This document shows positions 3,005-54,937 of a stretch of DNA of 64,000 nucleotides, piece after piece. Each line of letters starts with the position of its first letter. Positions within the stretch are counted from its first letter, which is position 1. The stretch lies in contig JANHCV010000001.1 in NCBI GenBank assembly GCA_025594325.1, positions 992,001 through 1,056,000 of the forward strand, read 5' to 3'. Under the pieces are notes generated by a model, which did no database searches, was not told the DNA's origin, and saw only the letters and a program-made list of their open reading frames with translations. The position numbers and the translations under genes are program-made. Source of the stretch: Blastocladiella emersonii ATCC 22665 (taxonomy: Eukaryota; Fungi; Blastocladiomycota).

Positions 3005-6000
3005 TCACCGGTGCGGGGGAGGCGGCGCGCGGAACACGACGCCATACGCCGCCAGCTCGCTGACCAGCTGCGCGAACTCGCGCCGCGCCGCGAGCAGCGC
3101 GTCGTACTCGGCCAGCCACGCCTCCTTGCGCTCCAGCTCCGTCATGATCGACCGGTGCAGCAGGCCGTGGGCGCCGTATGCTTTCGACTCGGCTGATGGT
3201 CGCGGTGAGGTAGTCGCCCGTCGCTTGGGCGATGGCTCCTCGCCCTCCTCGGCCGAACGCTTGCGGCCCTTGCCCGGCGATGGCGGGTGACTTGGCTCTG
3301 GTGGGGATGGGCTAGGCGACGGTGCACGAGCGGGTTGCTCCACGGGCGGTGATGCGGCGACCGGCTCAACGCTTGGTGATGGTGAGCGAGCGGGCTCGGC
3401 CGTGAGCGGGGTCGCGGGGACAGGTGGCGGCGGAGTAGATGTGGGCGATGGCGGTGCTGGCTCGACGATGGGCTGCGACTGCGCCTGCGACTGTTTCTCC
3501 ACCTCCGACAGCTCGACCTGCGGTTGCGGCGACGGGGAGGCGGACGCCTGCTTCGGCGGAGATGCGAGCGCCTGCGGCGCCGACAACGAGCCGAGACTAG
3601 GCGATGGTGGCTCGACCGTGTCCTCGGCCGCTACACCACGCGAGCTCGGACCCGCACCGTCGCCGTCACCGCCGCCCATCGGTACCCGCGAAAGGATCAC
3701 AGGCGACCCCACCACCTCCGCCTCCCACACCGAGATCCCGACGGGCGGCGAGCGGCTGAACACCTTGCTGGGCGACAGCGGTGCGGCGGGCGAGATCGGG
3801 AACAGCATCTGGGACACGAGCATGGGCGACTCGATGAGCGGTGGCGGGAGCAGCGGCGGCGTCGCGCACGCGGACGACGAAAAGGTCGCAGTCGTCGACG
3901 ACGGCCGGTCGCGCGCCCGCACGAGCCCCGCCGGCGGAGTGCTGCACTGCGCCCCGATCACGGACGCGGTCGCTGTCGAGGCCGCGAGTGACGGGTCCGC
4001 GTGACCGAGGCTCGCGCGCAGCGAGCTGGGCGAGTCGGGCGAGTCGGGAGGTGGCAGCGGGTCGGCGGCCGGCGTTGGTGCGAACAGGTCGAGGGACTGG
4101 ACCAGCGCCATGTGCTGATCCACGTCCATCGCCTCCTCCTCGTCGTCCGACGACGAGAGCAGCTGCGAGTCAATCGTCCCACCACCGCCGCCGCACGCGA
4201 TGCTGAGCGGACTTTCGAGCGTCGCCTCGGACTCGGACTCGGAATCGCTGCTGCCGTTCACCACAGACCCAGACACGTGCACGACCTGCGCGGCACGCGC
4301 CGGCGAGGGCGACGGCGATCGCGACCACATCTCATCATCGTCGCCCGTGAGCGGGAGGAGCGGCGACGACGGTCCATCGTCGCGGGGCGGCGAGCGCGGA
4401 ACGTCGGCAAGCGGGCGCGAGCTCTCGTCGCTGCTCGACCCGCCGCAACCCCCGTCGACGCGCGGCTGCAGGTGTATCACCCTGCTCGGGCTCGATCCCG
4501 GCCCGCCGGGCGCGTCCGACGAGTTGTTGGGCGACAAGATCCACGCGACGCTGACGGGCCGCCGCGCGCGGAGCCCGACGAGCTCGATGTCGCTCCCGTC
4601 ATCGTCGTCGTCGCTGGCATCGGCGGGCGCACGCGCGGGAAACCGCGGTGGTGCAGCGGGAGCGGACGCGCGCGCGATATCGTCGTGCGAGCCGGCGGCA
4701 GCCAGCTGCGACGACAGCTCGGCGGCCGACGCGGACCCGTTGCTTAGCGGCAGGATCTCCTCGTCGTCAGTGTCCGAGACGTCCTCGCGCGGCTGCCCGT
4801 GGCCGAGCGCCGAGAGCCGCGTCGCGCGGTGTGGCGGGGGCGACACGCGCTGCGACGTCGGGACGCTCGGCGGGGTAGGCGAGACGGTCGCTGAGGAGGA
4901 TGACGGCAGCGGGTGCTGCGAGAGCCGCGGCGGGGTCGGGATGACGTGGAGGGGTTTGCGCAGGTTCGTCACGGGTGGCGGGACGGCCGGGCTGCGTGGC
5001 AGCGGCATCGCGGGAGGAGCAGCGGGCGCGGTTGCGGAAGGTTTTGCGACGAGTGGCGAATGTGGCAGCGGAGGTGGCGAGGTGAGCGTCGCGGGCTCGG
5101 ACGGGACGAGGTGCGCGCTCGCCCACCGCGCGCCGAACGCGTCGAGGATGAAGGACGGGTCCTACACGCGCCGTGCGTCCGACCACCGAGAGTTAACGAC
5201 CCGACGAGCGAGGTCCCTTCTACGAGTACACGTACGAATTTCTGCAGCGGGAGCGGCAACGGAACCGGCGGCGTGCGCTCGGCCTCGGCATACGCGTCGA
5301 GCGCCACGACAAAGTCGGCGACCGAGACGAACCCGATACTCAGCATCGACCGTGGCGGGACGAGGACGTCGAGCATGGACGCGTTGCGGACGCGGTGGGC
5401 AAAGTTGAAGTAGGCGGCCACGTCGCCGGGTGCGAGCACCGTCATGGACGGCTGCGCGGACATGGCCTCGATGAGCGGCACGTTGATGACGGCGGCCGCC
5501 GTGGTCGCGCGCGCCGACGACGTCAGCGCCGGCGGGGCCTCGTCCTCCTCCTCCTGCACCGCCGCCCACACGATCTCGAACGGGACCAGCACCGTGCGCG
5601 CGTCCGCGTCAAACAGCGCGACCACGCTGGTCTGCGTCGGCGACGCGTCGAGCGCGTACTGCACGAACTTGGGCGCCGGCTGCGGGACCGGAGGGTGCAT
5701 GATGAGCGACGCGGGCGCCCGCGCGCCGCCAGTCCCTCGTGCTGTGGCGGACGGCGACGCGTCGTTGTCGCCGTTGACTGCGGGCTGCACGGCGAACGCC
5801 GACGCGGGCGGGCCGGGGAGCAGGCTCACGCGCGCGACGAGGTCGGCCTCGGTGAGTTCCGGCGGCGCCCAGCGCATCGACTTGCGCCGGGGGCCCGCAG
5901 CCGTGTTGGCGCCATCATCCTCGTCGTCGTCGTCGGTGCTGGCGAAACTGCCACGGACACCCGAGGGCCGGAGGCCGGGACCGAGCTCCGCGACACCGTC

Positions 6001-6258
6001 GCGTGTGGGCGACGCGACCGTGGACAACGACGACGACGACGATGCGCTCAGAGACCGGCGCGGCCGGGACCCGCGGTCCGTGTAGTCCGACCGCCCGCTC
6101 CTGAGCCGTGTCAGAGCGCTCGGCGATGAGGCGGACGCGGGGACCGGCTGGGAGAAGGACGCCGGCACGACGGCGTGATGGTGGTCATGGTCGCTGCCGA
6201 GGGCAGTGCTGCCGAACGTCGGCTGCGACGCGGGAATGCGTCTTGACGCGAGATGCAT
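3005..6258 (-). CDS. Hypothetical Pro/Ser-rich protein, 2 exons, short C-terminal coiled coil
   Basis: ORFs 4969..6258 and 3005..5008 join through a GTACGT...GTGTAG intron (~5234-5162), reading QKF|DPSFILDAF. No recognisable domain. Confidence 0.55.
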
Positions 6259-6527
6259 GGAGTAGGGGTGTTCAGCTGGTCGAGTGCGTGCGCATGCGAA
6301 GAGCGGGTCAGCGATGAGGGAGAGAGAGGAAGCGGACAGCGGACAGGAGAGTTGTGCTCAGGCTCGGCTGAGGAGTCATTTCCAAGTGCTGCTACGACGC
6401 GGTGGCCGGCCGACTCGGATCGAGGGAGGAGCATGGGGAAGAAAGTACATTCTGTGACACAAAATTGAGATCATGGTGGGGGGAATCTATACGAGCACGT
6501 CCGTCCGTCCTTCACGCAGCGCGGCCA

Positions 6528-8630
6528 TCAGCGGCCGCCCTGGTAGTAGCCGCCGCCGTTACCGCCGCCGCCCGACTGCGCCTGGTAGTAACCACCGCCG
6601 CCGTTGGGCTTCTCGGGCTGGCCGTAGTACCCGGCCTGCGGCTGCTGCGGCTGCTGCTGGTAGTACCCGCCGCCGCCGCTCACGCTGCTGCCGCCGTACG
6701 CGTCCGAGTACCCCGTGTACTGGGGCTGGACGTACGGCGACGGCGCCTGCTGCTGCTGCTGGTAGTAGCTGGCGCCCGTGTACTGCGGCTGGATCGGGCC
6801 GGGCGCGCCGCCGTAACCGCCGCCCGTGTACTGGGTCTGGATGTTGCCGCCGCCGTACACGCCGCCGGTGCCACCAGCCGCGGACGAAGTGCCCGTGGTG
6901 TGGGCGTAGACGATGGTGGAGCCGGTGCCCGCGGCCGCGGCGGCCGCCGCGGCCTGCTGAACCGAAGTCGACTTCTTTCCGGGTCCCGCGTTCTCGTACT
7001 CGACGCGGGTGTGGTAGTCGGCGGCGGCCTGCTTGGCGATACGCTTCTCCTCCTTGCGTGCGGTCATGCGGCTGCGGAAGGTGGCGATGCCCGAGAAGAG
7101 CATGGCGAGGGCGAACGCGGCGCCGCCGCCGATGGCGACCCAGGTCCACACGGAGAGGCCGAGCGGGCCGCGCACCTCGGTGTCGACCTTGGGCGCGTAC
7201 GAGTCGACCCAGGTGAAGTTGAGGCCGTTGTTGTTGATCTCCTCGACCTTGAGGATGCGCAGGTACTTGCTGCCGACCTTGGCCGTGTCCACGTCCTTGG
7301 CCTCGCGGATCAGGCCGCCGACGAGGAAGATGTGGTCGTCGTGCATGAAGGCGGTGGGCGCGAAGATGGCGGTCGGGCCCTTGTCCTTGTTGCTGATGGG
7401 CGAGGCGGCGGGCCACGCGTTGCTGGCCGTGTCGTACCACTCGATGAGCTCGCCCTCGTTGGCCTTCTTGGACGCCTCGGTGCCGCCGAGGTGGATCACG
7501 TACCGGTTCTTGAACAGGAACGTCTGGAACAGCTGGCGGAACGACAGCATCTCCTTGGCGTCGGACCGGCGGCCCGTGGCGATCTCGACGTAGTGGCGCG
7601 TCTTGATACGTGCGGCCGCCGAGATGGCGTCGACGGTCCCGACGCCGCCGGCCCAGAACATGTGGGTGGCGTTGAACGGGATGAAGCTGCTGCCGAGTGC
7701 GGGCGGGAGCAGCGTGTCGCGGGCGGGGCGCACGCCCTCGTTGGTGAAGGGGAACACGCTCGACGTCAGCGTCGACCCGTCGGCCGTGTCGAGCCCGCCC
7801 GAAATGAGCATGAACTGGCCCTCGCTGCCGGGCGTGCACGTTGCGTGGAACCACGGCACCACGGCGGGCGACTTTTCCTGCTGCCACTTGTTGCCGTTGA
7901 GCGGCTCGTAGACGAACCAGGGAGGAGACAGCTGGTCCTTGGTCGACTCAAACTGCCCGCCCGCAATGTAGATGGCGTTGGACTTGACCACGGCGCACCC
8001 GTTGCCGAACCCCGTCGACATGTCGGGCAGCGCCACGGCGTTGAGGTCCATGGCCGACACCTTGCCGGCGAGGTCCATGGCAAACACCTTCTTGCGCGCG
8101 CCCGTGTTCGCGACGGCTACACGCACGAGGCGCAGGTGCGATGCGTCAGTGTGAGTGGCCTAGTCGTGGATCGCCTTCCACGAGCCAAGCCACCACCCGC
8201 CAAGCGCCAGCGCCAGCTGCACGGGTCGCAGCTTGTGGCGCCAGCGAGGGACGGTGCGGAAGCGAACAAGCAGCGACGTACGGTTGTCCATGCCGCCGAT
8301 AATGTACATGGTCTTGTTGACCATGGCCAGCGTGGCGTAGGGGATCCCGACGGCGGGCGGCAGGTTTTTGAGATCGCCGCCGCTGAGCTTGTCGGTGGCC
8401 TCGGCCACGTCCACGTCGGTGCCGTTCTTGCGCGGCTTGGGCGCATCGGTGTTGTCGTCGACGGCGGGCTTGGGCGACGCGTTGGCCGTACCGTTGCCTG
8501 CGGGCGCCGCCGGTGCTGGCGAGTTGCCGCCCTGCGCCTGCACAGGGGACGCGGCGAGCGCCAGGAGCGCCACAGCGACGGCGAGGGCGCCGACGACGAG
8601 GAGGCGCGAGCGCGGGCGCTTGGTCGTCAT
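6528..8630 (-). CDS. Type I membrane protein: signal peptide, kelch/galactose-oxidase-like beta-propeller, one TM helix, G/Y/Q-rich cytoplasmic tail
   Basis: ATG 8630 MTTKRPRSRLLVVGALAVAVALLALAASPVQA (signal peptide). Intron GTACGT(8282)...GTGTAG(~8117). Kelch GG motifs MYIIGGMD, IYIAGG, MLISGGLD, MFWAGG, IHLGG, IFLVGG. TM VWTWVAIGGGAAFALAMLFSGIATF. Confidence 0.75.
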
Positions 8631-9063
8631 GTAGTAGAAGAAGGGGGAGAAAGCGAAATCTATGGCCGGAGGCGAGCTCACGGGCCGTCTAGGGAGGGCG
8701 GGCTGGGGCGGGGAGGGAGGGCGCCGACGTCCGCCGAGGCAAGGGCGGAGCGGGTCGAAGGGGCGGGTAGGGTCACAGTGCGCCGAGTCCCACAGCTGCT
8801 CGCGTCGTGTCTGCGTTGCGTAGCGTTGCGTTGCGTGCCGAGAGCGTGGACGTCGGCGGAGCGGAGTTGGGCAAAGTCGGTGGCCAGGCCCGTTTCGAAA
8901 CCAGGGTGTGGCGCCGTGGCGCCGGCGTGTGGCGCTGCTGCGGCACGCGACCTGCCGGACCGCGCTGGAGTCGCGATCAGGGGTAGCGACGCGTTGGACG
9001 CGTCCAATCCAAGTCCCAAGGCCGCACCGCTCGCGCTCCCTCCACCGCGACCGCTCAACCACC

Positions 9064-39274: not shown

Positions 39275-42200
39275 TTACTTGAGCGGCGGGAACGCGACGC
39301 GGTCGTCGAGCACCGACACGACGGGCGTGGTGATGACGGGCGGGTTGGACGGGCGGCGGAGCGCGCGCGTCGACGCCGCGGCGCGGGCAGCGGCGGCAGC
39401 CGACTTGGCGGGCGCAGGCGCCGCCGTCGTCGGGACACTCGCGGCAGCGGGAGCCGCAGCGGCAGCGGGCGCCGGGGAGCTGCTCTTGGCGGGAGCGGCG
39501 CCCTCGGACTTGGCCGCCTGGGCGGCGGCGGCGGGGCTCTTGCCCTTACCGTGGTGGTGGCCCTTGGCGTGGTTACCGGCCTGGCGCTGCTTCTTGCGCT
39601 GGATCGCGACCGACTCGGCGGCGTACTTCTTGAAGTCGGCGATGGTCTGGAACTTGGCAAGGGCGGCCGAGAGCTCGGGGCGGACCGTGACGGGGTTCTC
39701 CTCCTTGTCCTTGCGGTAGTAGAGGTAGGCCCAGAACTTCTCGAGGCCGTACAGGAGCTCGTGGGCGCGGTCGTCGGCGTCGGCGGCGCGGCGCTGCTCG
39801 TGGGCGGCGTAGTCGGCGAAGGTGAGGTCCGCGAAGTCGCGGAACACCTCGGCGCGGAACTTGTTCTCGAGCCCGTAGCTGTAGAAGCGGTACAGGCACT
39901 CGGTGCCGTACCGGTACCCCTGCTCGGCGTCCTCGAGCGCGAGCTTGCGGAACTCGGCGTACATCTTGCGGTTGAAGTGGTCGCGCAGGAAGTGCGACCA
40001 GAACCGGTACAGCGTGTTCATCTCGGCGCACCCGACCCCGTGCCGCTTGCGCTCCTTGAGCGCCTTGGAGTGGTACTTGAAGTACTTGTGCTGGATGAAC
40101 CCGTTCTCGCGCAGCAGCTCGTGGCTCGGGTGCTCGTGCCCGATCGCCAGCGTCAGCTCCTGCGCGAGGTCGGCCGCGTCAGCCGACTTGCTGAGGCGGT
40201 CCGCGTCGGCGGGGTTGGACGTCGACAGGAGCGCCGCCGCGGCCGCCGCCGCCGTCGCCGTGGCGTTGGCGGCGTCAGCAAAGGTGGCGTGCGTGGGCGA
40301 CGTCGCGGGCGAGAAGACGTAGCCGACCGACTCGGCGGCCGACGGGAAGTAGTTGCGGGTGTCGGGCTTCTCGGCCTCGGCGTCGGCGGGCGCGCCGCTG
40401 ACGGGGAAGAAGCGCGACTTCTTGTTGTTGCCGGCGGCGGCGTCCTTCTTCTTGTTGCTGGCGGCGACCTGCTGGATGAGCGGCGTGGGCTTCTTGGACG
40501 GCTTGACGGGCTCGATGGTGGTGCTGGGGGTCGCGTCGCGGCTGGCGACGGTCGTCACCTTCTGGTTGTCGGAGGCGGCGGCGGACCGCGCGGACCGGCG
40601 CAGGGCCACCTCGTACTGGTACAGGCCCTCGTTGATGGCGTCGTTGAAGTCGTCGCCGACCGACTTGCGGTCGAACCCGATGTTGTACCCCTTGTCCTTG
40701 CCGTCGTGCTTCTTGACGCGCTGCGTCACGATCACGAGCGTCGACAGCATGTCGTCGGGCAGCTCGTCGTCGGACCAGCCCTCGACCCACTCGTCCGCGT
40801 CGTAGTCCGAGTCGACGTCGCCCTCGCCGCGCAGCACGCGGTGGCGCAGCTCCTCGTCGAGCTGGAACATCTCCTCGTCGTCCTCCTCGGCCGCCACCTC
40901 AGCGGGAGCGGGGACCGCGGTCACGGCGTTGCGCGATGTCTGCGACGAGGTCTCGGCGACAGCGGGCACGGCGGCCGCGGGGAGCGGAGCGGGACTCGGC
41001 GTGGCGCGGTGCTCCGACGACGGCGTCGCGGCGAGCGCGGGCGAGCGCGGCGAACTGGTGCCGCTGCCGCGCGTCGACAGCTTGCGCGTGCGCGCCGCGT
41101 TCGAGATCTTGCGAGTGCGGACGACCTGGGTCCAGCCCTCCTCCTCGGTGGCTTCGGCGGCAGCCGGCGAAGCGGGGGCGGGGGCGGCAGCAGCGGGAGC
41201 GGCGGTCACCTCCTCGGCGACCTTGGCGGGCTCGACGGTCTCGGTGGCCGTGGGGGCGGCGACCTCGGCCTCGGGCTCGGGCTTCTTCTCCTCGACGGCG
41301 GCGGCGGGCTCGGCGGCCTTGGGCTCCTCGACGGTGGCGACGAGCGCGGGGACGACGGGGGCCACGACAACGGGCGTGTTGACGTACTAGATCAGGGAGC
41401 GAGAGTCAAGTCAGCAACTGCGAGTTCAAGACGGCGGATCGGGTTGACGCTGGATCCGAGGGCAAGGAATGACGAGTCCTGGTCGCTCACAAGTGTTCCT
41501 GACGACTTAACTGACGGGCACGCCGCCCGCGACCCATCTCCTCGCCGCCATCCGCACCAGCAAACGCCCGCTCAGCATCGAGCAACCGACCGACCGAGAC
41601 GCAGTGGGACCGAGCCGCGGTCGTGATCGAGCTGCCGCGTGCGCGCCGCGAACTCGATCACGGCAGCGTCGATGAGCTGCGCCCGCGGCAACGGTCGGTC
41701 GGTCAGTGGTCGATGCTCGAGTCTCGAGCTGGCATGGCACTGGTAGTTGCGGGGACGGCGGCGAGGGAGCGGGTGGCAGAGCGGGTACGCAGAAGGAGAG
41801 AAGGTAGGAAGAACAGATTTGGTTGCACAACAAAAACGGGATAATGATGGAGGGAGTGAAGGGAGCAAAAACGAGTGGACGAGAGATCACCCATCTAAGG
41901 CCCACCGGGACGACAAGGCAGCGAGGCGGACCGAGTGTCGACGAGAGGAGCGAGGGTGAGGGAGGCACGGGTCGGGCGAGGGAGTGATGGTTGGGGAGAT
42001 GGGGCCGCCCCGGCCGAGTCGTACCAGAGTGCCATGCCGTCGGACTGCGTGAGTGAGCTGGGCGAGCGAGACGAGTGCTGGTGCTGCGGATGGCGGCGAG
42101 TCGAAAAGGCCGCGTGCGCGGCGACGCCGTGCAGCGACAGGTCGACGGGAACACGGCGAGTGGTCGATGCGCGCGAGGACCAGGACGCCAGGATGAGCCG

Positions 42201-44232
42201 AACGGAGGGGTGGGGGAAGAGAGGTAGTGGAAGCGGGGAGAGGAGCAGCGATAGAATGGAAACTAGTGTAAGGGAAAGGAACGAACGAGAGCGGAAAAGT
42301 AGCAAACGGGAAGGAAGGGAGAGAGAGGATGCTACGTGGTAACAGATGGGAGGACGAGGGCAGGTAGGGAGGGAGGAGGATGGGATCCGAGCGTCAACGA
42401 GAGGAGGAAGATCAGGCACTCACCGCTGGCGGGGTGTAGGTCGACTTGGGCTTGAGCGACTCGGCGACCTCGGGGGCGAGGGGCCACGTCTGCCAGTTGG
42501 TCTTGCAGCGGACCAGGGTGCGGTCGGCCGAGAGCTCGACCTTGTCCGAGTTGGCGAGCGAGTCGGTGATGAGCTCGAGGCTGTCGGTGAGGATGCGGAC
42601 GCGGTTGAACTTGGCGAGGAAGGCGAGCTGGACCCAGCCCTCGGCGAGGTCCATGTTCTGGCGCAGGTACAGGTCCTTGCACAGGTTCTCGACCGAGAAG
42701 TAGTACTCGATCTGCTGCTGCACAATCGACTTGAGCTGCGTCGTGTCGACCGTGAACCGCGTCGACGCGGCCGAGTGCGACTGCGAGTACATGGGCTGCT
42801 GCGCCGACGCGTACCCGGCGTGCGAGTACTGGCCGTGGTGGTGGTGGCGGTGCTGGCGGCGGGGGCCGTTCTGCTGGTAGCCGTAGCCGTTGAGCGACAA
42901 GTACTGGCCGTTGGCGCCGGCCTGCTGGTTGTTGCGGTTGTTGCGCGGGCGCGGCGAGCGGGCTGGGGTGCCCTCGGCGGCGGCCGTCGGGAGGACGGCG
43001 GGCGTGGTGGGCTTGGGCGGGAGGGGCAGCTTGGAGCCGGTCGAGGCCGCAGCGGCATCGGCAGCGGCGGGCTCAGCAGCACCGTTTTCGGTGTTGGCCG
43101 AGGCATCAGCGGCATCAGCGGAGGCGGGGGCAGCCTGCTGCTTGTCGGCGTCGGCCTTGTTGCGGTTGTTGCGCTTGGCCTTGGGCGCGCGCGGGGTGCC
43201 GTCGGCGTTGACAGCGGGGGCGCGGGTGCCCTCCTTGCCGTTGTTGTCGCGGGAGCGCGGCGAGTTGGCGGAGCGGGTCGACTTGGGGACGATCTCGATC
43301 TGGACGGCGGTCCAGGCGGCCTTCTTGCCCTTGCGCGGGGTGCCCGAGGCGGACGACTCCTTGGGCGAGGGCGCGACCGAGTCGGACGCAGCAGCGGCAA
43401 CAGTGTCGACGACGGGGGCAGCGGCGCGCTTGGCCTCGGCCTGGACGGGGGTCGCCGAGCGGGTGGCGGCGGGCGACGAGGTGGCCGAAGCCGGGACCTT
43501 GGCCTGGTCGAGCGACGGCCACTTGTTCTCGGCGGAGGCGGCAACGGGCGCATCGACTACGGAGTGCGGATCGGAGTGTGAGTGGCGGGTCGAGCGAAGG
43601 TGAATGCAGCAGATCCGCGACGAACCTGCTGGAGCAGCGAGCGACACGGCGAGCGCGGCAGGGACCTTGCCCCAGGCGCTCACTGCAGGGATCGGGGCGG
43701 GGACGTAGACGACGGGCTTGGCCGGAGCAGCAGCGGCCTCCTCGGCGGGGGCAGCCGACGACTCGGCATCGGCAGCCGCCTCAGCGGAGGCAGTCTCGGC
43801 CTCGGTGGCGGCAGCCGGCGCATCCTTGGCGGCGGCGGGCGAGCCAGTCGACGACGAGCGCGGGGCGCGGGGCGCGCGCGGGCCGGCCGACCTGGCGGGG
43901 CGGGCGGCCTCCTCGCGGGCGCGCTGCTTGGCCTGCTGCTTGCGGGCGTGCTTGCGGACGACGGGCGCAAAGTCGTCGTCGTCGCCGCCAGCGGTGGCGG
44001 CCGCGGGGGCGGGAGCGGGGGCAGCAGGGGCGGCGGCGGGAGCAGCCGACGACGAGGCCGCGGGCTCGGCAATCGTCACGGGCGCGGCGGCGGCCGACGC
44101 GGCGGGCTTCTTGTGCTGCAGCTCGGCGACGAGCGAGGCGGGCTTCGGGGCCGGGATGGCGTTCCACGGCGACTTGATGGGGGCCGGGGCGGGCGCCGCC
44201 GGGGTCGGGGCTGGGGCGTCCTCGTGCGACAT
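39275..44232 (-). CDS. LARP1: La-related protein 1 (La motif plus DM15 repeats), 3 exons with one 1037-nt intron
   Basis: La motif [42 protein letters not shown] (~42480-42730). DM15 [12 protein letters not shown]...[33 protein letters not shown]...[17 protein letters not shown]...[11 protein letters not shown]. Phase-0 intron GTGAGT(42423)...CTAG(41387) joins the two long ORFs in frame. Probable short in-frame intron at ~43560-43628. Confidence 0.9.
41387..42423 (-). other. Long spliceosomal intron of LARP1 with nested inverted repeats (predicted large RNA stem)
   Basis: Complementary pairs: 41443-41457/42383-42398, 41476-41484/42178-42186, 41493-41499/42148-42154, 41521-41526/42118-42123, 41541-41562/42076-42100, 41731-41745/42022-42038. 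Internal pairs 41575-41596/41692-41716 and 41622-41631/41653-41662. Confidence 0.75.
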
Positions 44233-45027
44233 GGTGGAAGGTCGAGGGGATATATCGAGGAGGGGAGGGAGGGGAGGGAGGGGAGCACGAGTGATGCGGA
44301 TCACTGGTGGTGCGGCTGGGTCGGCAGAGGGCGAATGCAGCAGACGGCGAGTCGGCGGCAGGGCGGCAACGGCGGCGACAGCGAGATGACCTTCAGGGCG
44401 CGGTGCTGGGTGGCGAGCAGCGGCGGCGTGCACTGGGTGAGTGCTGCTGAAGGGAGGGACGGGAGGGGGAGGCGAGGGTGTGCGCGTGGAGGACCGGGGA
44501 CGCTGGCAACGGGGCGGCGAGCTCGTTCTTTCTCCAGTGCAGGGAGTCTTGCGCGGGACAGGGGACCTGCGCGCGGATACGGGTGGCGGGCAGAGAGGAC
44601 GCAGGGGAGAAGGAAAGGTCGGCGAGCGAGCACGCAGGGCCAACCTGGCTTCGCTGCGCCCTCGCCTCATTTCAACTCGGAAAACAGGGACGCTGCGCTC
44701 TAACCTCGGCATATTCGTTCTGCCGCTCACGGCCATGCTGGCGGGGAGCCGATCGGCTGCGCGCTGTGGCCATGGCCACCGTCGCTAGCCCGGCGATCGC
44801 GGCCGCGGGGTCGCTCCACGGCCACGGCCACGGCCATCTCCCCGCTCGTCACCTCCCCGACGATTAGCCACCACGCACGACGTGTGCACCACGCCGGCTT
44901 CACCACGGTGTGGTCTGCTTCACGATCCACGCATGAATTTTCGCGAGTGTGTTGATCTCGGCGGCGGCCGGGTGGGTCAGGTGGGCGCACTTGACCCGTT
45001 GCGAGGCGCGTTTTTCCGCTCGAAATG

Positions 45028-45149
45028 CAGGGGACCCGCACTCGAGGTCGGGCCACGTGACTACCCTAGTTGATTGCTGTGGCAGGCGCTCTGACGCACA
45101 CGCGCGCCGCTGGAGCAGCCGTGGCCGCGGCCACCGCCACCGTCGGCGA
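45028..45149 (+). repeat. Left terminal inverted repeat
   Basis: Reverse complement of 47835-47950 apart from 4 substitutions and one 6-bp indel (GCCACC). Confidence 0.9.
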
Positions 45150-45569
45150 CCGCTCCTCTCCTCGCTCGCTCGTCTGCGCACTCCACCAATACCCCAAATG
45201 CTAGTAAACATGTATCTGAGTCACGGCAACTCGCTCACCGGCCACCGCTTTGCTGATCCTGCGCCCGACCGCCTGGCGCGACTCCTCGCGCTTCCGCCCA
45301 CCTATTGGTCGCTGCCATCGCCGGCGAGGGCACGGCTATGCTTCCCGTCACCGTGACCGACTGAGGTTGGGCCGACCTGCTGCTCGACGGCTATTCTACG
45401 GCACCGGTGCCGACCTCGCTGGCCGAGTCCTGCCGCACCTTCACCATGGCCAACCTGTCGGTCCTCGCCGCCGTCCTGCCCATCGACATCGATGACCGCC
45501 GCCGTGTGTTCAAGCCGCACTCGCTTCTTCGCTGCTGTGGCTTCCCGGGCTGCTTCCCGTCCCACGCAG

Positions 45570-47400
45570 TCGCTCCGCAAACATCTCCTCCTCGTCGCCA
45601 TGCCCCACCCGCCGCTGCAGCGCGTGCTCGAGAAGATTGAAGGCGTGCAGCTCACCAAGCTCATCGTCGTGTTCATCAAGTACGTCCTGCTGTGCGTCCT
45701 GCTTGAGCAGCCCGGCCCGTGGGAGGACCCGATCCGCGCGCTGCTGCAGTCGATCCCGGGCGCCGCCGCCAAGGAGCGCACCTCGCTCAACCTCGCCGTC
45801 GAGCTGTGCCTGCACCGCCATACCGAGGGCCTCCTGGCCGTCGATCCTCCTCTCCGCTGCGCGCACACCCGCCATCCTCGATGTCGGTACACCGACAACG
45901 GCGCTGCTCGACCTCCTCTTCTCGCGCGCCACGCCCGAGGTCCTCGAGGACGCGCCCGACCTGCACGCGCACCCGGTCCTCGCGCCGCTCCAGGCGCGCA
46001 TCGACGCGGCGAAATCGGCGACGCCCTCGCTGCAGGACCGCCTCGCCCGCGTGTGTGCGCGCATCGTGTCGCCCGACCTCGTCGTCGCCGAGGCCTCGCT
46101 CGACGAAGCCCTCGCGCTACTCACGCAGATCCACGCGTCGTCGGCCGACGCCATGGTCCGCAACCTGCACGTCGTGGTCGACGCCCTCCTCAACGTCGCC
46201 GAGTACCACCCGACGCCCGCCGTACGCGCCACCGTGTGTCTCGGGCAGCTCGGGGCCGTCTATTTCGGCGATTTATTGGGCGCCGCGGCCGCCGCGATGC
46301 GCGGCGAGGCCACCGTCTCCGACAAGGACGGCGGGCTCAAGACGGGCGTCGTCGCGCACCAGGAGATCCCCGTGCTGTGCGCCGAGGTGCTCAAGTCGTG
46401 CCTGATCCCCTTCTTCCGGTCCGGCGCGTCCCATTTCGCGCAGACCATCGTCGCGCACGCGATCCATCGGCTGCTCAAGCTGCACCGCAAGACGTGCCTC
46501 GACGCGCTCGACGATTTTGACCAGTCGACGGTGCGCCACCTGCAGGACAGCAAGTACCGCGTCGACGAGCCCATGCTCGTGGCCGAGGCCGACGCGGCCG
46601 CCGCCATGTTCCAGCCCGGCGCCGTGTCCTTCTCCGCGTAGACGTGCTGGTTCTGCCTCCGCCTCGCCGCCCGCTGCGCCGACTCGGCGCTCGTCGCCGT
46701 CTTCCGCGCCCTGCACCCGCTGCTCGCGCAGACCCAGCACCACGAGGTCGCCACCGTGCGCTCCCCTTCATCGTCCTACACCTGTGCCTTGTCGCGAGCC
46801 CCGCGCTCGACTCGGTCGTGTCCGAGTTCATTCACGCCCTGCAGCACGTGGCCGGCGGCGACCTTGCGATGCAGTCGTTCGCGCTCGCCATTTTCGACGC
46901 CAGGAGCGCGCCAAGTTCGCCGAAAAGCGCAGCCGCCGCTCCACGCCGAGTGCATTGGGCGCGCCGAGCCCGCGCCGTACGACCTCGAGGCGTCGGTCCA
47001 CCCTGCCGCCCGCGCCGGTCGACCTTGGACCTCGGACAGCTCTTCCTCGACGTGTTCCTCGACGTGTACCGCCGCCTGCGCAACGAGGGCGTCGACTAGG
47101 CGCTCGGCGCGTCGCACCTGTTCCAGCAGCAGCAGCCGGTGGGCGGCGGCGGTGCCGACACGGTCCAGGACCCGCGACACCTCGCGCTGCAGCACGAGGT
47201 CCGCGTGCTCGCCGTCTACCACGCTGCGTCCGTTCGCGGCAGCAGCAGCGGGAGCGTTCCGACACCCCCGACGCGGCTCAGCGCGTACCAGGCGTGGCGT
47301 GAGCTCGGGTCCTTTGACCTCCTCGCCGAGCAGCGCACGGGCGCCATCACGGCACACCGAGACGCACCCCGAGTGGAGCGCCGACCTCGCGCCGACCCGG
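45570..47400 (+). pseudogene. ATR: Internal fragment of ATR/Mec1/Rad3 PIKK kinase (HEAT region into FAT), disabled
   Basis: VCLGQLGAV resembles ATR CLGELGAI. AQTIVAHAIHRLL resembles AQDSAAYAIQELL. SFSA*TCWFCLRL resembles NFAEWSASWAGYL. ALPFIVLH; DLAMQSFALAIFD...HWARR resembles DLCQLSTQTVFSMLDHLTQWARH. In-frame TAG at 46639-46641 and 47097-47099; frameshifts at ~45843 and ~46757. No kinase domain. Confidence 0.75.
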
Positions 47401-47834
47401 TTACCCCCACACCGATCCAGTCGCCGCCACCCCGAGCGTCGGGTACGCTCCTCAACGACCCCGCCCACGCGCGCAAGCTCGAGCTCGACGCGCGCGCCCG
47501 CGCACGGTCCAGGCCGACGTGTTCCGCGAGCAAAGGCTCAGCTGCGCCTGTGCGACCATCGTCGACCGCCACCGATTCGCCGACCTCTTCACGTTCCACG
47601 ACACGGCGCTGCTCGAGACCCGCACCGCCAAACCCACCAACGTTGAGGCCATCGTCAACGCGCGCTACTAGCGGGTTGGGACGCGGCGGGATTGCGCGCA
47701 CGCGCGGTTCTCAGCGCGCGAGGAACCGTACCGAGCGCGCTGGTCGCGGCCGCGGTCGCGCTCATTCGAAACTTTTAATACATTCCGTTACATTGATCAT
47801 ATGTGTGTTTGAGCCGGCGGGATGCGCGAGGTGA

Positions 47835-47950
47835 TCGCCGACGGTGGCTGCGGCCACGGCTGCTGCAGCGGCGCGCGTCTGCGGCAGAGCGCCTGCCACA
47901 GCAATCAACTAGGGTAGTCACGTGGCCCGACCTCGAGTGCGGGTCCCCTG
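47835..47950 (-). repeat. Right terminal inverted repeat
   Basis: Reverse complement of the left TIR, followed by the second copy of the 9-bp TSD. Confidence 0.9.
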
Positions 47951-48218
47951 CTCGAATTGCCAGTACCTCCACCACTCACTCCGTTCGGGTGTCAACTGTG
48001 CGGGGCTTTGCCCAACTGCCCTCTCGCCCGCGATCACTTAGCGCAACGGACGCGTTGTGGACGCGTGATTCAAGTAACTGCATGATTTATGAAGTGGAAC
48101 ACACGGAACTCGCTTCAGGTGCAGCAGCGCTGACTGAGACCGTGCTTCGGATCCGCGTTACATGGAGGGACACGAGAGAAAGGGTCGCGACGCGTCAGTA
48201 TCGCGCGTTGGAGCTGTC

Positions 48219-48254
48219 CCGACACGCCTATTTCTCGAGAAATAGGCGTGTCGG
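48219..48254. repeat. Perfect 36-bp spacerless palindrome
   Basis: CCGACACGCCTATTTCTC|GAGAAATAGGCGTGTCGG. Confidence 0.95.
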
Positions 48255-48437
48255 CTTGCGGTGAACATCGCTCCACCGCACCGATTTTTATCGGTCCGCC
48301 CCTCCCCGCTGAAAACGCATCCTTGCATAGCATCTTCAAGCACTCCAAACCCCTGGATGAAAATCAGAGCTCCCTCACTCGATAGAAACGCAGTCTGTGG
48401 ATACATAAAAATCGATTCTGCGGTCCCCTGAAGAGCG

Positions 48438-48469
48438 AAAAAAAAAGCGCTGGGCGCGTCGCCCAGCGC
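48438..48469. repeat. 10-bp GC hairpin with 3-nt loop next to an A9 run
   Basis: A9 then GCGCTGGGCG-CGT-CGCCCAGCGC. On the minus strand this reads as a hairpin followed by T9. Confidence 0.8.
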
Positions 48470-49495
48470 GCGATTTGATTTCCAGTGAACTCAGTGTATT
48501 GTGAAGAAACACGCTCAAAACGGGTAGTCACTCACGCGCCGACGTGTTACCAGGAGCCGAATGCGCCAGCGCCTTAGTGTCTCGAGTTCCAGATTGGGTG
48601 AGTGATGGCGCGCGAGTCAGGAGGGCGAAACTGGAGCGGGTGTGTTGAGGCCTCTGTCAGCAGATCGTACTGAGCGTTGTTGGGCGGGAGCAAGAAAAAC
48701 GTACAGGGTGAGAAACCTCTAGGCCATGACGAAGCGGGCGCACTGAGTACTTGACTGAGCGGAGCCCATGGCCTACTGAGTTAGTGCGAGACGTACCGTA
48801 TTCCAACGCGTGGTCACTGCTTGAGCTTGGGCTGAAACGAGAGCATACGAGTTTCGGGCGAAGCTGTCAGGGACGTTGTTTACTCGAATCCGGACTGGAT
48901 GAGGCATGAAGTCGGTGAGAGCGGGGCAGCGACGTGCGCGACGGGTGGCGACGGCGGAGTGCGGGGCTGCGGCAGGCGGTGGACGGCGATGGCGGAGTGC
49001 GAGGCAGTGGGGTGTGAGATGCAGCGGGGAGTGCAAGGCAGCGACGGGCGGCGGGTGGCGATGGCGGTGCACGAGGGAGCGTCGGGCGGCGAGTGGCGAC
49101 AGCGCAGGTCGAGGCAGTACCGGTCGGACGGCAGATAGTCGGAGGCGCCAGCGGGGTGTGAGCGAACGGGAGCGAGGGCGAGTGGCGGGGGGCGAGGCGC
49201 ATTTGTAGCGGGGGCAAGCCACACGGGGCTGATCGAGCTCTGATGGCGAGCTGCAGCGCGCACGCGCGCGACCTGTCAAGCCCGTCACGGCCCCACCGCG
49301 CGTCCTTTGCGTTTCGCACGCGTGAGGTCGGCGTCGGTTGGGCGCGCCCCACTTCAAGCACACCCGCTCTCTCCTGTGAACACTCCCTGCACACACAAAA
49401 TATACCATGAAACGTTATACTGGATCAAATGAAATTCAAGTCTGCTGCACGGTGCCGCTCTGCGAATCGTGAGGACCAGGCGGTCAGCGCCATGA

Positions 49496-52400
49496 TCACC
49501 GCCCGCTCACCGTCCGCTTGCTCCGACGGAGAGGCTGCTTGGGCGGCGCGGGCTGCTCGGGCTCGGCGTCCTCCATCTCTTGGTCCTCCTCCTCGGCCGG
49601 GACCGTGCGACGGGCAGCGGCGCTCTTCTTGCTGCCGCTCGACTTCCCGCCGCCCTGCTTGCCGCCACCCGTGCTGCTGCGACCCGTCGAGCCAGCGTAC
49701 TCGGTAGCCGACGCGCCGGCGCGGCCATGCTTCCCGCCGGTCACGCTTGAGCGGGCACCCCCGCCCCGCACCTGGCTCTCGTCGCTGTCGCTGTCGCTGT
49801 TGCTGTCGCTGTCGCTGCTCGACTTGGCAATCTCGCTGTCGCTGTCGGACTCGGCAATCTCGGACGCGCGAGCGCCTGCTGCCGTGTGACGACGCTTGCG
49901 CGGTGGCTGCGCCTGCTCCTCGTCGTCGCCCTCGTCGTCGTCGCGGCCCTGCTCGACCTCCTCGTCATCCACATCTTCGTCGTCGCCGCGGGCCAGCTCG
50001 CTGCTGCTGCCACGACGACTCGGTGACGACGCGAACAGGCGACGCGTCGTCCCGGTCGTAGCGGGCGGCGGCAGCGGAGGGTGAGACGCCGCGAGTTGAG
50101 CCAAACGACGTGGCGAGAGCACGCCGTGCCCCATGACACGCGGAACCGCTGCGGCCGCCGCTTCCTGCGACACACCACGAGCCGACCGCGAATCACCGGC
50201 CGTGCGCGGGTTGCTGGGCGCCTGGGTGGTGGCTGGTTGAGTGGTGGTCACACGCTCGATCCGCTGCGCGAGCCACGAATTCGCGCCGCCTAAAAGTTGA
50301 GCGAGGGCGACCGAAGCGTCAGAATCTGGAACAATCGCGCCGCGTACATGCACAGCCACGAACGCACCCGCGCCAACACGTGTAGCTGTCCCACGCGCCG
50401 TCGATCCCGTACGCGCTGATCCCGCGCTGGACTGCGACTCGCCGCATGCACCACGGTCCGTCCCGTCGCTGCGCGGGCTGGCCGTCGGACGGGTTGTGGC
50501 TGGCAACGGCCTCGCGCGTCACGCGTGGGTCGCGCGGGTCGGCGTTCGTGTGCACAGGTGGCGGTGGTGGTGGAGAAGCTGCTGCGCACGACGCGGCACC
50601 CTTCTTGTCCTGCTTCTTCCCCTTACCCGAGGTGTTGGCCTTGACGAGGCACGTACGGCAGCGGTAGGCGCCGGTGAGCGAGGCGAGACTCGCAACCATG
50701 GCGAGCTTGGGCGCGTCACCCAGGACGTAGCCACAGCGGCCCACGAGCACGACCTTCTTGCCCTGCGGGTCGACGGCGAGGATGCCGCGCTCGACCTTGT
50801 CCTTGAAGTCGGCGATGATCTTCTGGGCGAGGTGCAGCGGCTCGACGCCCTTGGCCGCCGCGATGAACACACACGAGTCGGGGCAGTAGTTGATGGATGC
50901 GGGCACGTTGCCGAGGTGATACTGAGCGACCTCGAACTTGTTGTTGCGCTTCGACGTGTTGCCCATCGTCTCGTCGGCCCATTTGCCGATCACGATGGGC
51001 AGGACGGGGATACCGCCGTTCTCCATGGACAGCCGCCGCGCGTGATGGACCGCGTTTTCCTGGCGCTGGCGCTCCTGCAAGTAGACATTTTCCGAGCCAT
51101 GAACGTCGGGATCCCATTCTCCATACACGCGAGCACCCTGAACAAGTACGACGCGAGTGGAGTGAGTATTTAGGAGTTCGCGCGGCAAGCGAGCGTCGGC
51201 GCGTACTCGAACCACAAAGTCGAGCTCGTCGCCGTCGACCGTCGCATCAGGACGCGGATGCGGTTCATGCAGCCCGCACGGCGGGACGACGCGCTGATAC
51301 ACGAGCCAGAAGCGGTTGGCGTCCATGAGATCGCGCGGATCGAATTCCCCAGCGTCGCTGCGCAGCGCCTCGATCTGCTGTCGCTGCTGCCGCTGCCGCG
51401 GTTTCCCACGGCCACGCTTCTGCCGCTTCGGGCTCGGCGGGCGCTCGTCCTTGCGGAACTCGGTCACGATGTCGCACCGTCGCAAAAGCACGCGAACACG
51501 GGTCGGGTCGCCCTTGACGCGCTCGAGCGCGACGATACGGCCGAGGCGGCCCGAGAGACCAGGTACAGGCGCGCGCAGCATGACCACGTCGCCCACGAAG
51601 TAGGTGATGCCGCCGATCGACGTGTTGGCGGCCTTGTACCCGTAGAACAGCTCCTTGGCGCGCGGCGTGTCCATGAAGTTCTCGATCACGTCGGGGTCGG
51701 CGGAGGGCAGGAACTGGAGCTTCTCAAAGACGCCCGGGGTGGTGGCGACGAACGGCAGCGGCTCGCTGATTGGGATGATCGAGAACTCGCGTGCGCCGCG
51801 CATCGGGGCCGGGAAGTGCGCGAGACGCGGGCCAAATTCGACCTTGCGCAGCTTCTCCACCGAGTCCAGCGCTGGAACCGCGCTGCCGAGCTCGACAAGC
51901 TGCTTCGCGGTCCAGAGCGTCTTGCGTCGCAGCAGCCGGGTCATCGACGGATCAAGGTTCATAAGCCAATGCAAGAGAACGAGTTGCATGGTGACGAAGG
52001 GGAACCTGCGCTTGGGCTCCTGCACATTGCTAGAAGTCGGGGATGAGGAGGGCGGCGCCGTGGCAGTGGGGGTGGCGCCGCGATCTGCGCGCGCCAAACC
52101 GCGACGCGTGCGCGTGTCGGTCAGCTGATATTCCGACGCGTCTCACGCGTCTCGCAGCATGAACGCGTACGCACCTGCTTCACCCGGCACCGGCAGTTCG
52201 GAGGTAGACTCGGAAGAGGAGGAATCACACAGGCCGGAAAAGGTGTCGCTATTTCACTGCGCGTGTCGTTGAACGTCTCGCCGCCCGCGTTGCTGCTCGA
52301 CTCGTTGTGCGAGCCACTGTCCGAATGCGATACCATTTGAGCGGCGGGCACCGCATCCAAGGGGTGCGTGATGTCAAACTGCGTCGCATCAAGCTGTTCA

Positions 52401-52910
52401 TACAGGTTGGGTAGAGCTGGCACAAAAACCGCAGGAACTGCAAGTGGCGACGCGGGCACGTCAGGCTCGAAGCCTACGCCATGCGGGGACGGACGAGCTG
52501 GCACAGGGATCGTCACCGCCGAGCCACCGTTGGCCAAGTAGGCGTTGTTGACCTTGGTCGAGTAAGTCGTGATCGTCTCAGAGGCCTCGTAGGTGATCAT
52601 CTACGCGGCGGTAGTCAGTTTTCATCATCATAATGGATTCGTTGTTGCGCGCTCGAACCCATTCCGCTGGGATGTCATAGTGGCTGTGTTCCTCGCGGAG
52701 GATCCGCGCTTCCTCCGACGCAGTGAAATCTTCATGCCATTCGTCATCGTGCAGCACTTGAACAGCAGCAACATCGTCAACGACGCGGCCTGCTTCCAGC
52801 TCGCGCTGGACGTGCAGCACGAAGTTTTCAGAGTGCTTTACCGACCTCCGATGTCGACCGAGTGCACTTGGGCTCTCAAAGGTCCTTCCATCGCATACGA
52901 TGCACTGGAA
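49496..52910 (-). mobile_element. Degenerate CMC/CACTA-like (Plavaka/Transposase_21-related) transposase gene: C2H2 finger, BAH-like region, truncated catalytic core, acidic tail
   Basis: FQCIVCDGRTFESPSALGRHRRSVKH at ~52830-52910. TYFVGDVVML...LGRIVALE. Core PIVIGKWADETMGNTSKRNNKFEVAQYHLGNVP...GILAVDP...VLGDAPK...GAYRCRTC, similar to the fungal D(D/E)xxGNxSKxxNK...GDxP...CRxC family. Frames break at ~52600, ~52100 and ~50350. Confidence 0.7.
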
Positions 52911-53399
52911 CTGTAGGATTAGGTGGTATCCACGTCAGCTACGCTGGCACTCGAGTTTGCATGTAGTCAACGCAACCGTTTTCTTCATGGTAATGTGATC
53001 CAGTATCTGCCAGGGAGCGTTGCTCGAACAAGAAAAATGATTTATTCTGACATTTTATTCAAGTGGGAGACCTGGTGTGTTAGTTTTATGTGGGCTGTGG
53101 GAGACAGGTTGGGTGAACATCGGTCAAGCGGAGAGGTGAAAATCGGCCAAGCCCCTCGGGTCGATTTTCACCCCAAGCCCATCCGCAGGCGTGTCTCGTT
53201 TTTGCTCGCCTTCCTGCTGTTGAGCTGGATTAAGTCGACTACGGACGTGGCGGAGATAGCTGAAGGTCGCTGAACGGATCGTTGTTCAAGTTGCGGGAGC
53301 GACTCCTTGTGCAGCGAGTTGAGATCAAGCGCGCACAAACACGAACTGGCTCGAGTGATGGTGGCTTTGATCGAGCGCTAGCGCGACTTGATTATGGGC

Positions 53400-54700
53400 G
53401 CCGATTACTCTCAACATCGCCTCAATGCAGCATACGCGCACGTAGCGCGTAGTTCCAGCGCGCTCAAGGCAACCGAGGTAGAATTTGTGACAGACGCGTC
53501 AAGGCGAGCCACTCGCTCATAACAGCATGCTGGTGTTCTGAATGAGCCAAAAATAAAGCAGTCGGCGATCGTGAACTAATAACAGAATGTATCATGCACA
53601 ACGAATGCACGCGAAGACTCGATCTCGACTAAACGCGTCGATTTTCTGCTAAGAACGCGACCAACGATGATTCCGTTCGCGTCGCACGCTATGAGCCAGC
53701 TCGAGACCTCGCGTGAGCTCGCCTCCTTGGGCACGGAACAACAGAGCTCGGATGAAGCGGATCTATGGTGGAAGGATCGCGAAAGGTCGACGCGAGTTAC
53801 GGTGCCACGGGATGTCGTTGACAGCGACACGAGACACTCTAGTAGCGCAGATGGATGGATATCGTGTACGTCTTGATGCGCGCATGAGCGGAGCGCTTTG
53901 TCTCGCTCTTGTTCGCCTGATGAAAGTTGCTGATGGAGCGATCCTCATCGTCGTGCGAAACCCCGGAGAACGTGAGGATTGTCAAAATTGTACTGACGCA
54001 CGCCCGTCGGTGGAAAGCTAGCATCAACGGTTCCAACCGCGGTCGCGACGGTTTGCTCAGCCGACTTTCTCTCGCCTCCAGTTGCTCGGCAGACCTCGAC
54101 AAGGAGTTTTTAGTGAATCGATAACACGTTTCGCCGCTGTGCAGGTAGCAGGGGTCGAGGTAAGAAGCGGCCAGCAGCGCAGCAGATGAGCCGCGCGTGA
54201 TTGCGCTGGAGCAAAGCCAGATGTGCGCTTCGCTCGTGATGAAATTCGCATCCCACGCCACCGAAACAGAGATACCGCGTAACCGCTCTTCGCGAGGGTC
54301 TAAGCGACTTCGTTGCACAACCCTCGCTTGGCACGACGTCCCTTGGCAAGTGAACAGGACGCGAGGGGTCGCCGGGCGGGCACAACGGCGGTATAGTGGC
54401 AGCAACGGCGGTCAAGAAAAACGAGTTTTTCGACACAAGGGGAAGAACTAGAACACAAATAGCGTATCCTTTAAGCGTGCGTCACCACGGGAAACAAGGC
54501 ACTGAAAGGCCCAGGTACCGTGAAAGCGTCCCACAACACGCTGCTCCACTCGGCGAGCTCGCCTCAGCAGCACTTGTGCAGTAGCAAGAGCAGAGTGCAA
54601 AAGCGGTGCCAGCGGAACACTCAAGTCAACGGCCGAGTCGAGCACAGCACGTCGCCGTGCGAGCGCCACCCAAAGGCGCCGAGGTGGGACAGGACCGGCG
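53400..54700 (-). mobile_element. Lower-GC decayed coding-like segment, possibly a hAT transposase remnant
   Basis: The only hint is AALLAASYLDPCYL (cf. hAT AxxxLDPRY) in ORF 53839..54405. Many stops. Confidence 0.25.
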
Positions 54701-54894
54701 TGTTGTCGATTTCATAATTTATGGAATCCATTGCATAGAGTAAATGAGCTTCATTGAAGAAGGAGAGCAAACGGGAGGGGAGCGGAGCGGAAGCGAGAGC
54801 CGAAGCGAAGTGGCGCAGCGCGACACGGGGAGTGATGTCATTGAGAAAAGTGTGACTGGAACGTGACGAGCGTCAAAACGAAATCGCAGCGCCT

Positions 54895-54937
54895 ATAGCT
54901 TGGGCAAAGCCCCGCATAGCTTGGGCAAAGCCCCGCA
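54895..54937 (+). repeat. Tandem 21-bp duplication containing a 17-bp motif that is inverted at 47999-48015
   Basis: ATAGCTTGGGCAAAGCCCCGC x2. TTGGGCAAAGCCCCGCA is the reverse complement of TGCGGGGCTTTGCCCAA at 47999-48015. Confidence 0.85.

Follow-up and report, generated by a model that had tools for sequence, protein, structure and literature searches.

A 64-kb stretch of the genome of the blastocladiomycete fungus Blastocladiella emersonii ATCC 22665 (assembly GCA_025594325.1, contig JANHCV010000001.1, from about 0.99 Mb), termed the window in the following and the source of all coordinates unless stated otherwise, contains a 2.9-kb non-autonomous element with terminal inverted repeats (TIRs) at positions 45028-47950. 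The element carries a decayed fragment of the ATR/Mec1 gene between its ends and starts 796 bp upstream of the annotated start of a LARP1 gene (position 44232). It is referred to as copy 1, as a second copy resides on another contig.

Copy 1 is bordered by a target-site duplication (TSD) of 9 bp. A direct reading of the flanks gives CTCGAAATG at 45019-45027 on the left and CTCGAATTG at 47951-47959 on the right, which agree at 8 of 9 positions; the 8-, 10- and 11-bp registers were checked as well and none gives a duplication. The left TIR (45028-45149, plus strand, tip 5'-CAGGGGACCCGC) and the right TIR (47829-47950, minus strand) were delimited by an inverted-repeat search, a count of the tip sequence and an alignment of the two arms. 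The inverted-repeat search returned arms of 110 nt (45027-45136 and 47842-47951) that are 96% complementary, and an adjoining stretch of 35 nt, 80% alike, prolongs them across a 6-bp indel, so that the arms measure about 110-122 bp. In the arm alignment the first 66 nt are identical and are followed by 4 substitutions and the one 6-bp indel. The TIR sequence contains CAGGGGACC..., and within the 64 kb its 34-nt tip CAGGGGACCCGCACTCGAGGTCGGGCCACGTGAC has exactly two occurrences, one per strand, compared with none in 100 shuffled sequences. These features had been described in an earlier, sequence-only reading of this DNA, whose account of the TIRs, of a 9-bp flanking duplication and of a position some 800 bp upstream of LARP1 agrees with the present measurements. 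Internal to the arms lie a left (45150-45339, plus strand) and a right (47747-47828, plus strand) subterminal region, both unrelated to ATR; the left shows 85% identity to the second copy in a three-way alignment and the right 99%. Scans of positions 44000-49000 for tRNA genes and Rfam families gave no match.

The cargo and its parental ATR gene

The cargo was identified by an exhaustive phmmer search of 1.84 billion proteins, in which the 334-amino-acid open reading frame (ORF) at 45637-46638 served as the query. Seven proteins were matched. The best of them, P0001, has 2149 aa and was found with E=3.5e-142 and 88% identity, residues 65-334 of the query aligning to its residues 676-945. P0001 carries the Pfam domain set of ATR (M-HEAT_ATR, FAT, HEAT_ATR, PI3_PI4_kinase and FATC) and is therefore a genuine ATR/Mec1 orthologue. 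Its gene is intact and lies at about 3.37 Mb of JANHCV010000001.1, on the same contig as the element and 2.3 Mb away from it. The ATR fragment postulated earlier is thus confirmed by a highly significant match, and the existence of a separate intact locus removes the concern that the window might hold the only ATR gene of the fungus. Other tools did not name ATR: Pfam on the cargo ORFs and a PDB sequence search were blank, and the ESM Atlas returned only generic HEAT/TPR neighbours for the cargo.

As a whole, the cargo occupies 45340-47746 on the plus strand and corresponds to ATR residues ~391-1360, as determined by phmmer, Pfam, blastn and an exon map. In coordinates of the ATR locus (L001), the homology runs from 4516/4526 to 7422; in blastn it is resolved into three collinear blocks that connect positions 313-2720 of the element with L001 4526-7422. 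The region at 47480-47720 belongs to the ATR-derived sequence as well, aligning to L001 ~7150-7422 at 72-73% identity and encoding an ATR-like peptide. About 2.4 kb of cargo therefore stand for 2.9 kb of ATR, instead of the ~1.8 kb of coding sequence estimated from the letters alone. This is roughly 45% of the ATR gene and spans the N-HEAT and M-HEAT regions and the beginning of FAT, but does not reach the kinase domain. In the ATR gene model, three small introns are located close to the 5' end, and L001 4050-9791 forms a single exon that contains the cargo homology entirely. The use of introns to distinguish capture from DNA from capture from RNA was considered and abandoned as uninformative, because the captured part has none.

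Compared with ATR, the cargo contains 16 indels, 13 of which shift the reading frame, and several stops. These lesions, the end of the homology at about residue 1360 and the lack of any Pfam match speak against a functional ATR/Mec1 paralogue, for which an ORF with FAT, kinase and FATC domains would be expected. A transposase was looked for on both strands, and no ORF of the element had a Pfam match, in agreement with the earlier reading. The GenBank annotation places a 521-aa 'hypothetical protein', H9P43_000357 (P0002), on the decayed cargo of copy 1 (45446-47668), and a second one, H9P43_005473, on that of copy 2. Both gene models switch frames in the order 2, 3, 1, 3, 2, with 'introns' placed over the lesions, and are best read as annotation artefacts, i.e. 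as models of transposon-borne pseudogenes.

A second copy and the history of the pair

A word-index search with P0002 led to P0008, the product of H9P43_005473, which is 94% identical and encoded on contig JANHCV010000006.1. In coordinates of this locus (L003), the gene model spans 6001-8387 and the surrounding element, copy 2, spans 5393-8677 (3285 bp). In a blastn comparison, homology between the copies starts at 45028 (L003 5393) and ends at 47950 (L003 8677), exactly at the TIR tips, and the flanks are unrelated. Copy 2 has TIRs of 125 nt that are 96% alike and a 9-bp TSD of its own, TGATCCAGC and TGATCCAAC, with one mismatch (8/9); neither copy can be read with an 8-bp duplication. The concern that the TIR might be single-copy, or that further copies might have 8-bp duplications or none, is removed by this TSD-flanked copy with the same cargo. 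Copy 2 is inserted 147 bp from the start of its neighbouring gene, so that both copies lie upstream of gene starts. Directly after its right end, in the flank at L003 8678-8702, the target is repeated nearly in tandem, as TGATCCAACCAG and then TGATCCAACCGAG.

The cargo boundaries are identical in both copies, and at least 11 indels relative to ATR are common to them. The shared lesions comprise deletions of 13, 1, 28, 70, 15, 50 and 3 bp and insertions of 1, 19/31, 10, 1 and 2 bp. Identical boundaries and shared indels point to a single capture, and the pair goes back to this one event, after which the cargo decayed and the element transposed at least once. A deletion of 296 bp is specific to copy 1 (junction at 45834-45836, plus strand); the missing stretch is kept in copy 2 and in ATR, and loose ends of assembled contigs at 45834/45836 continue into ATR/copy-2 sequence.

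Copy number was estimated from four DNA runs, all from one sample of one strain, by mapping contigs of at least 80% likeness to positions 44400-48600. For the left part, depth in run X2 was 110 for copy 1, 128-134 for copy 2 and 141 for ATR, compared with 123 for unique flank, so that each is approximately single-copy. The right part, in which the copies are near-identical, reaches 2.5-3.5 times single-copy depth, and the right TIR, where both arms of both copies are summed, about 8 times. Across the element, contig depth thus ranges from 2 to 8 times single-copy, a sum that takes in both copies, ATR and the inverted arms. These values fit two to perhaps four copies and no abundant family; judged by the TIR depth, further TIR copies of at least 80% likeness can number a few at most. 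No joint that skips the element was found in the four runs, which says little about an empty site as they represent one sample. The element is old and probably inactive, because both TSDs are mismatched, the left sides of the copies are 10-15% divergent, copy number is low and lesions are shared. The active capture proposed from the sequence alone is accordingly not supported: the TSDs match at 8 of 9 positions, the 13 frameshifts and at least 11 shared lesions accompany the left-side divergence, and read depth fits only about 2-4 copies. An effect on the LARP1 promoter and small RNAs against ATR, both raised in the sequence-only reading, are hypothetical consequences of the element.

Changes specific to one copy are biased from GC to AT (38:14 and 34:17). 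A signature of repeat-induced point mutation (RIP) or CpG methylation was sought among them and no enrichment was seen, CpG sites accounting for 42 of 77 C>T/G>A changes where the background is about 48%.

The contig depth also revealed a high-copy repeat at the right border of copy 1. It covers 47955-48054, tailing to about 48236, and its contig depth is some 50-100 times that of the flank. Its start at 47955/47956 falls within the right TSD. In other contigs it is preceded by many different sequences, and the ATR-carrying element appears to have been inserted at its very edge. The repeat has no second copy in the window and is neither a tRNA nor a member of an Rfam family.

Divergence is distributed unevenly along the two copies. 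Among the four TIR arms, 15 sites differ between the copies with left and right identical inside each copy, and a single site is side-specific. The outer 60 nt of the TIRs differ by 20-22% between the copies, yet the two arms agree fully within copy 1 and almost fully within copy 2. This agreement within and disagreement between copies suggests that the two ends of each element evolve in concert, likely through conversion from arm to arm or joint replacement of both ends. In the cargo, the two left zones differ by 14.5% and 10.4% between copies and the two right zones by 2.8% and 2.1%; the right subterminal region differs by 1.2%, and the outer right TIR by 20% (P ~7e-20 for heterogeneity). 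The pattern would be consistent with a gene-conversion tract of about 1.6 kb between the copies in their right part. Relative to ATR, the cargo is 28% and 18.5% divergent at its two ends and 8-10% in the middle (P ~4e-20).

Transposon type and competing explanations

The cargo derives from ATR, an intact ATR gene is present elsewhere, the captured fragment has decayed to a pseudogene and the element has moved at least once to an unlinked site. With good confidence, the whole can be explained by a non-autonomous cut-and-paste TIR transposon, most likely of the Mutator type, that captured about 2.9 kb of the large ATR exon. The fragment may have been taken up as DNA, through template switching in the course of repair, and a Mutator-type enzyme supplied in trans could have moved the element. 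Later gene conversion would have made the right 1.6 kb of the copies nearly identical, with the two ends of each copy evolving in concert, and both copies would now be fossils.

Duplications of 9 bp together with TIRs of more than 100 bp are the classic signature of Mutator and Mutator-like elements (MULEs). Mutator TSDs range from 8 to 11 bp and typically have 9 bp, the length found in both copies; Mutator TIRs often reach 100 bp or more, and those of copy 1 (110-122 nt) and copy 2 (125 nt) do so at 96% likeness. The defining features of a Pack-MULE, a host gene fragment in place of a transposase and a parental gene elsewhere, are present as well. On this basis Mutator membership is somewhat favoured, as a provisional assignment drawn from TSD and TIR length. 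Of the MULE-like identity given to the element in the sequence-only reading, the mobile, transposase-less TIR element with its host ATR fragment stands, and its placement in Mutator goes as far as these lengths allow.

Several observations weigh against this explanation. Neither an autonomous partner nor a Mutator-type transposase linked to the element ends was found among the ORFs of the element and those scanned in the window, and the long ORFs scanned elsewhere in the window contain no MULE domain. The tip CAGGG resembles hAT ends. Divergence is strongly uneven both against ATR and between the copies (chi-square P ~1e-20), and one capture followed by one split fails to account for it without extra conversion events. 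Finally, a central segment of 0.9-1.2 kb is free of indels and has a ratio of non-synonymous to synonymous divergence (dN/dS) of 0.27-0.42, unlike purely dead cargo.

Some room is left, though clearly less than for Mutator, for a gene-fragment-carrying non-autonomous transposon of another superfamily that makes 9-bp TSDs, be it P-like, KDZ/Zisupton-like, hAT-like or undescribed. No transposase is linked to the element, its tip fits the hAT-like pattern YARNG, and a transposase-like ORF without a Pfam family lies 2.4 kb away at 50319-52097. Yet the block that contains this ORF has unrelated ends, two independent 9-bp TSDs with TIRs above 100 bp are the very combination of classic Mutator elements, and hAT transposons make 8-bp duplications and have TIRs of 10-25 bp, whereas no 8-bp register fits either copy. 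That no transposition took place at all, the loci being a segmental duplication of an ATR pseudogene that lies by chance between inverted repeats, is extremely improbable. Only two copies have been confirmed and parts of them are 98-100% identical, but such a duplication is excluded by homology that runs exactly from tip to tip and by a separate, different 9-bp TSD for each copy amid unrelated flanks.

The central cargo (45836-46641, plus strand) raises a different question. It is in frame with ATR residues 676-945 and ends at a TAG stop at 46639 that is common to both copies. No indel is found over 925 bp in copy 1 and 1158 bp in copy 2, compared with 16 in the other 1.7 kb. A dN/dS of 0.27-0.29 is obtained when ATR is the reference and of 0.42 when the two copies are compared, while the ratio is 0.8-1.4 outside this part. 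The central dS of 0.18 falls within the 0.15-0.26 of adjacent zones. A late gene conversion from ATR was considered as the source of the low central divergence and dropped, since dS is near that of the neighbours and the low divergence is explained mostly by low dN rather than by youth. On the branches specific to the copies, a spectrum-aware count gave 18 synonymous changes beside 22 non-synonymous ones, the expected synonymous share being about 30%, and a combined binomial estimate of the synonymous excess gave P ~0.03. These values are a weak hint that the central HEAT-repeat ORF may be constrained. That it is alive in both copies, as a predicted HEAT-repeat polypeptide under selection (~45836-46638; 347 codons in copy 2), nevertheless seems unlikely. 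Constraint in the ATR lineage alone may produce the signal against ATR; by our own estimate, a synonymous fraction of 0.53 compares with at most 0.44 expected (P ~0.08). Many outer indels may have arisen when the fragment was captured, and numbers are small. Moreover, no start codon is evident in the ATR frame of the segment, which terminates at the shared stop. Selection on captured cargo has been reported for some rice Pack-MULE cargoes. A still bolder scenario, which we regard as rather improbable, would combine a working Pack-type capture system outside plants with purifying selection, in both copies, on the central ATR HEAT part, which would be expressed and act as a decoy or as a regulatory polypeptide or RNA; the TIRs would be homogenised by conversion within the element, and the cargo would exchange sequence with other copies, perhaps with the essential ATR gene.

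Neighbourhood and relation to known capture systems

To the left of the element, a LARP1 homologue with a La domain and the LARP1 HEAT region extends over 39275-44736 on the minus strand, annotated with 1283 aa. In its 5' region, 470 bp left of the element, the sequence CAGGGGACCTGCGCGCG at 44559-44575 shares its first 12 bases with the TIR tip of copy 2. This look-alike and another one at 48420 were rejected as further ends, as 25 of 100 shuffles reach the observed count and that at 44559 has no partner arm. To the right, a block of about 7 kb (47996-54937) is bounded by an inverted motif of 17-20 nt at 47996-48015 and 54900-54937, and its ends are unrelated to the ATR-carrying element. It encloses the 592-aa ORF at 50319-52097 on the minus strand, whose C-terminal part is transposase-like by eye, which has no Pfam family match and which is annotated as a 676-aa gene. 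A perfect spacerless palindrome of 36 bp, CCGACACGCCTATTTCTC/GAGAAATAGGCGTGTCGG, is found at 48219-48254.

The closest parallels are the Pack-MULEs of plants (Jiang et al., 2004, Nature 431:569, via PMC4522978; Ferguson et al., 2013, via PMC8647823). Like these, the B. emersonii element is non-autonomous, has long TIRs and a 9-bp TSD and contains a host gene fragment instead of a transposase; it was amplified after the capture, inserted upstream of genes and had its cargo annotated as a gene. In contrast to them, its host is a blastocladiomycete fungus and its family is very small, with about 2-4 copies. The definition of plant Pack-MULEs further includes TIR kinship to an autonomous MULE, whereas the assignment in B. 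emersonii is made from TSD and TIR length. A further difference lies in the cargo, which in plants is typically short and in many cases chimeric; here, one long piece equivalent to 2.9 kb of a single exon was taken up.

Two other systems share individual traits. Maize Mu classes have common TIRs around unrelated internal sequences (PMC3276141). They resemble the present element in their long TIRs, in arms that are more alike within an element than between elements and in internal DNA of host origin. However, the B. emersonii element has no known MuDR-like partner, its tip shows no relation to the Mu sequence, and the two copies carry the same cargo yet differ by 20-22% in the outer 60 nt of their TIRs. 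In Dothideomycetes, histone H3 has undergone hAT-mediated transduplication (PMC6710886; PMC3538342), another case of a fungal DNA transposon that multiplies host gene sequence between its ends. Those elements are autonomous, about 9.5 kb long, make 8-bp TSDs and took a whole coding sequence from a transcript; they are present in tens to hundreds of copies and often mutated by RIP. The B. emersonii element, by comparison, has no transposase, a 9-bp TSD, part of a gene and no RIP-like or CpG signature.

Gene-fragment capture by cut-and-paste transposons is well documented in plants. The literature search turned up no Pack-MULE-type element described from early-diverging fungi, and the reports found on gene-fragment capture by fungal cut-and-paste transposons cover only hAT elements in ascomycetes. 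In Rhizophagus, MULEs adjoin expanded gene families (PMC8647823), and the B. emersonii genome paper leaves transposons unmentioned (PMC9730499). To a transposon specialist the find is unsurprising. It provides, however, an example with clear boundaries and two copies from an early-diverging fungus that forms zoospores, and gene-fragment capture is therefore not confined to plants. Two annotated 'hypothetical protein' genes can now be recognised as models of transposon-borne pseudogenes. The co-variation of the TIRs offers a small test case for how long TIRs stay matched, and the uneven decay of the cargo a test case for selection on captured fragments.

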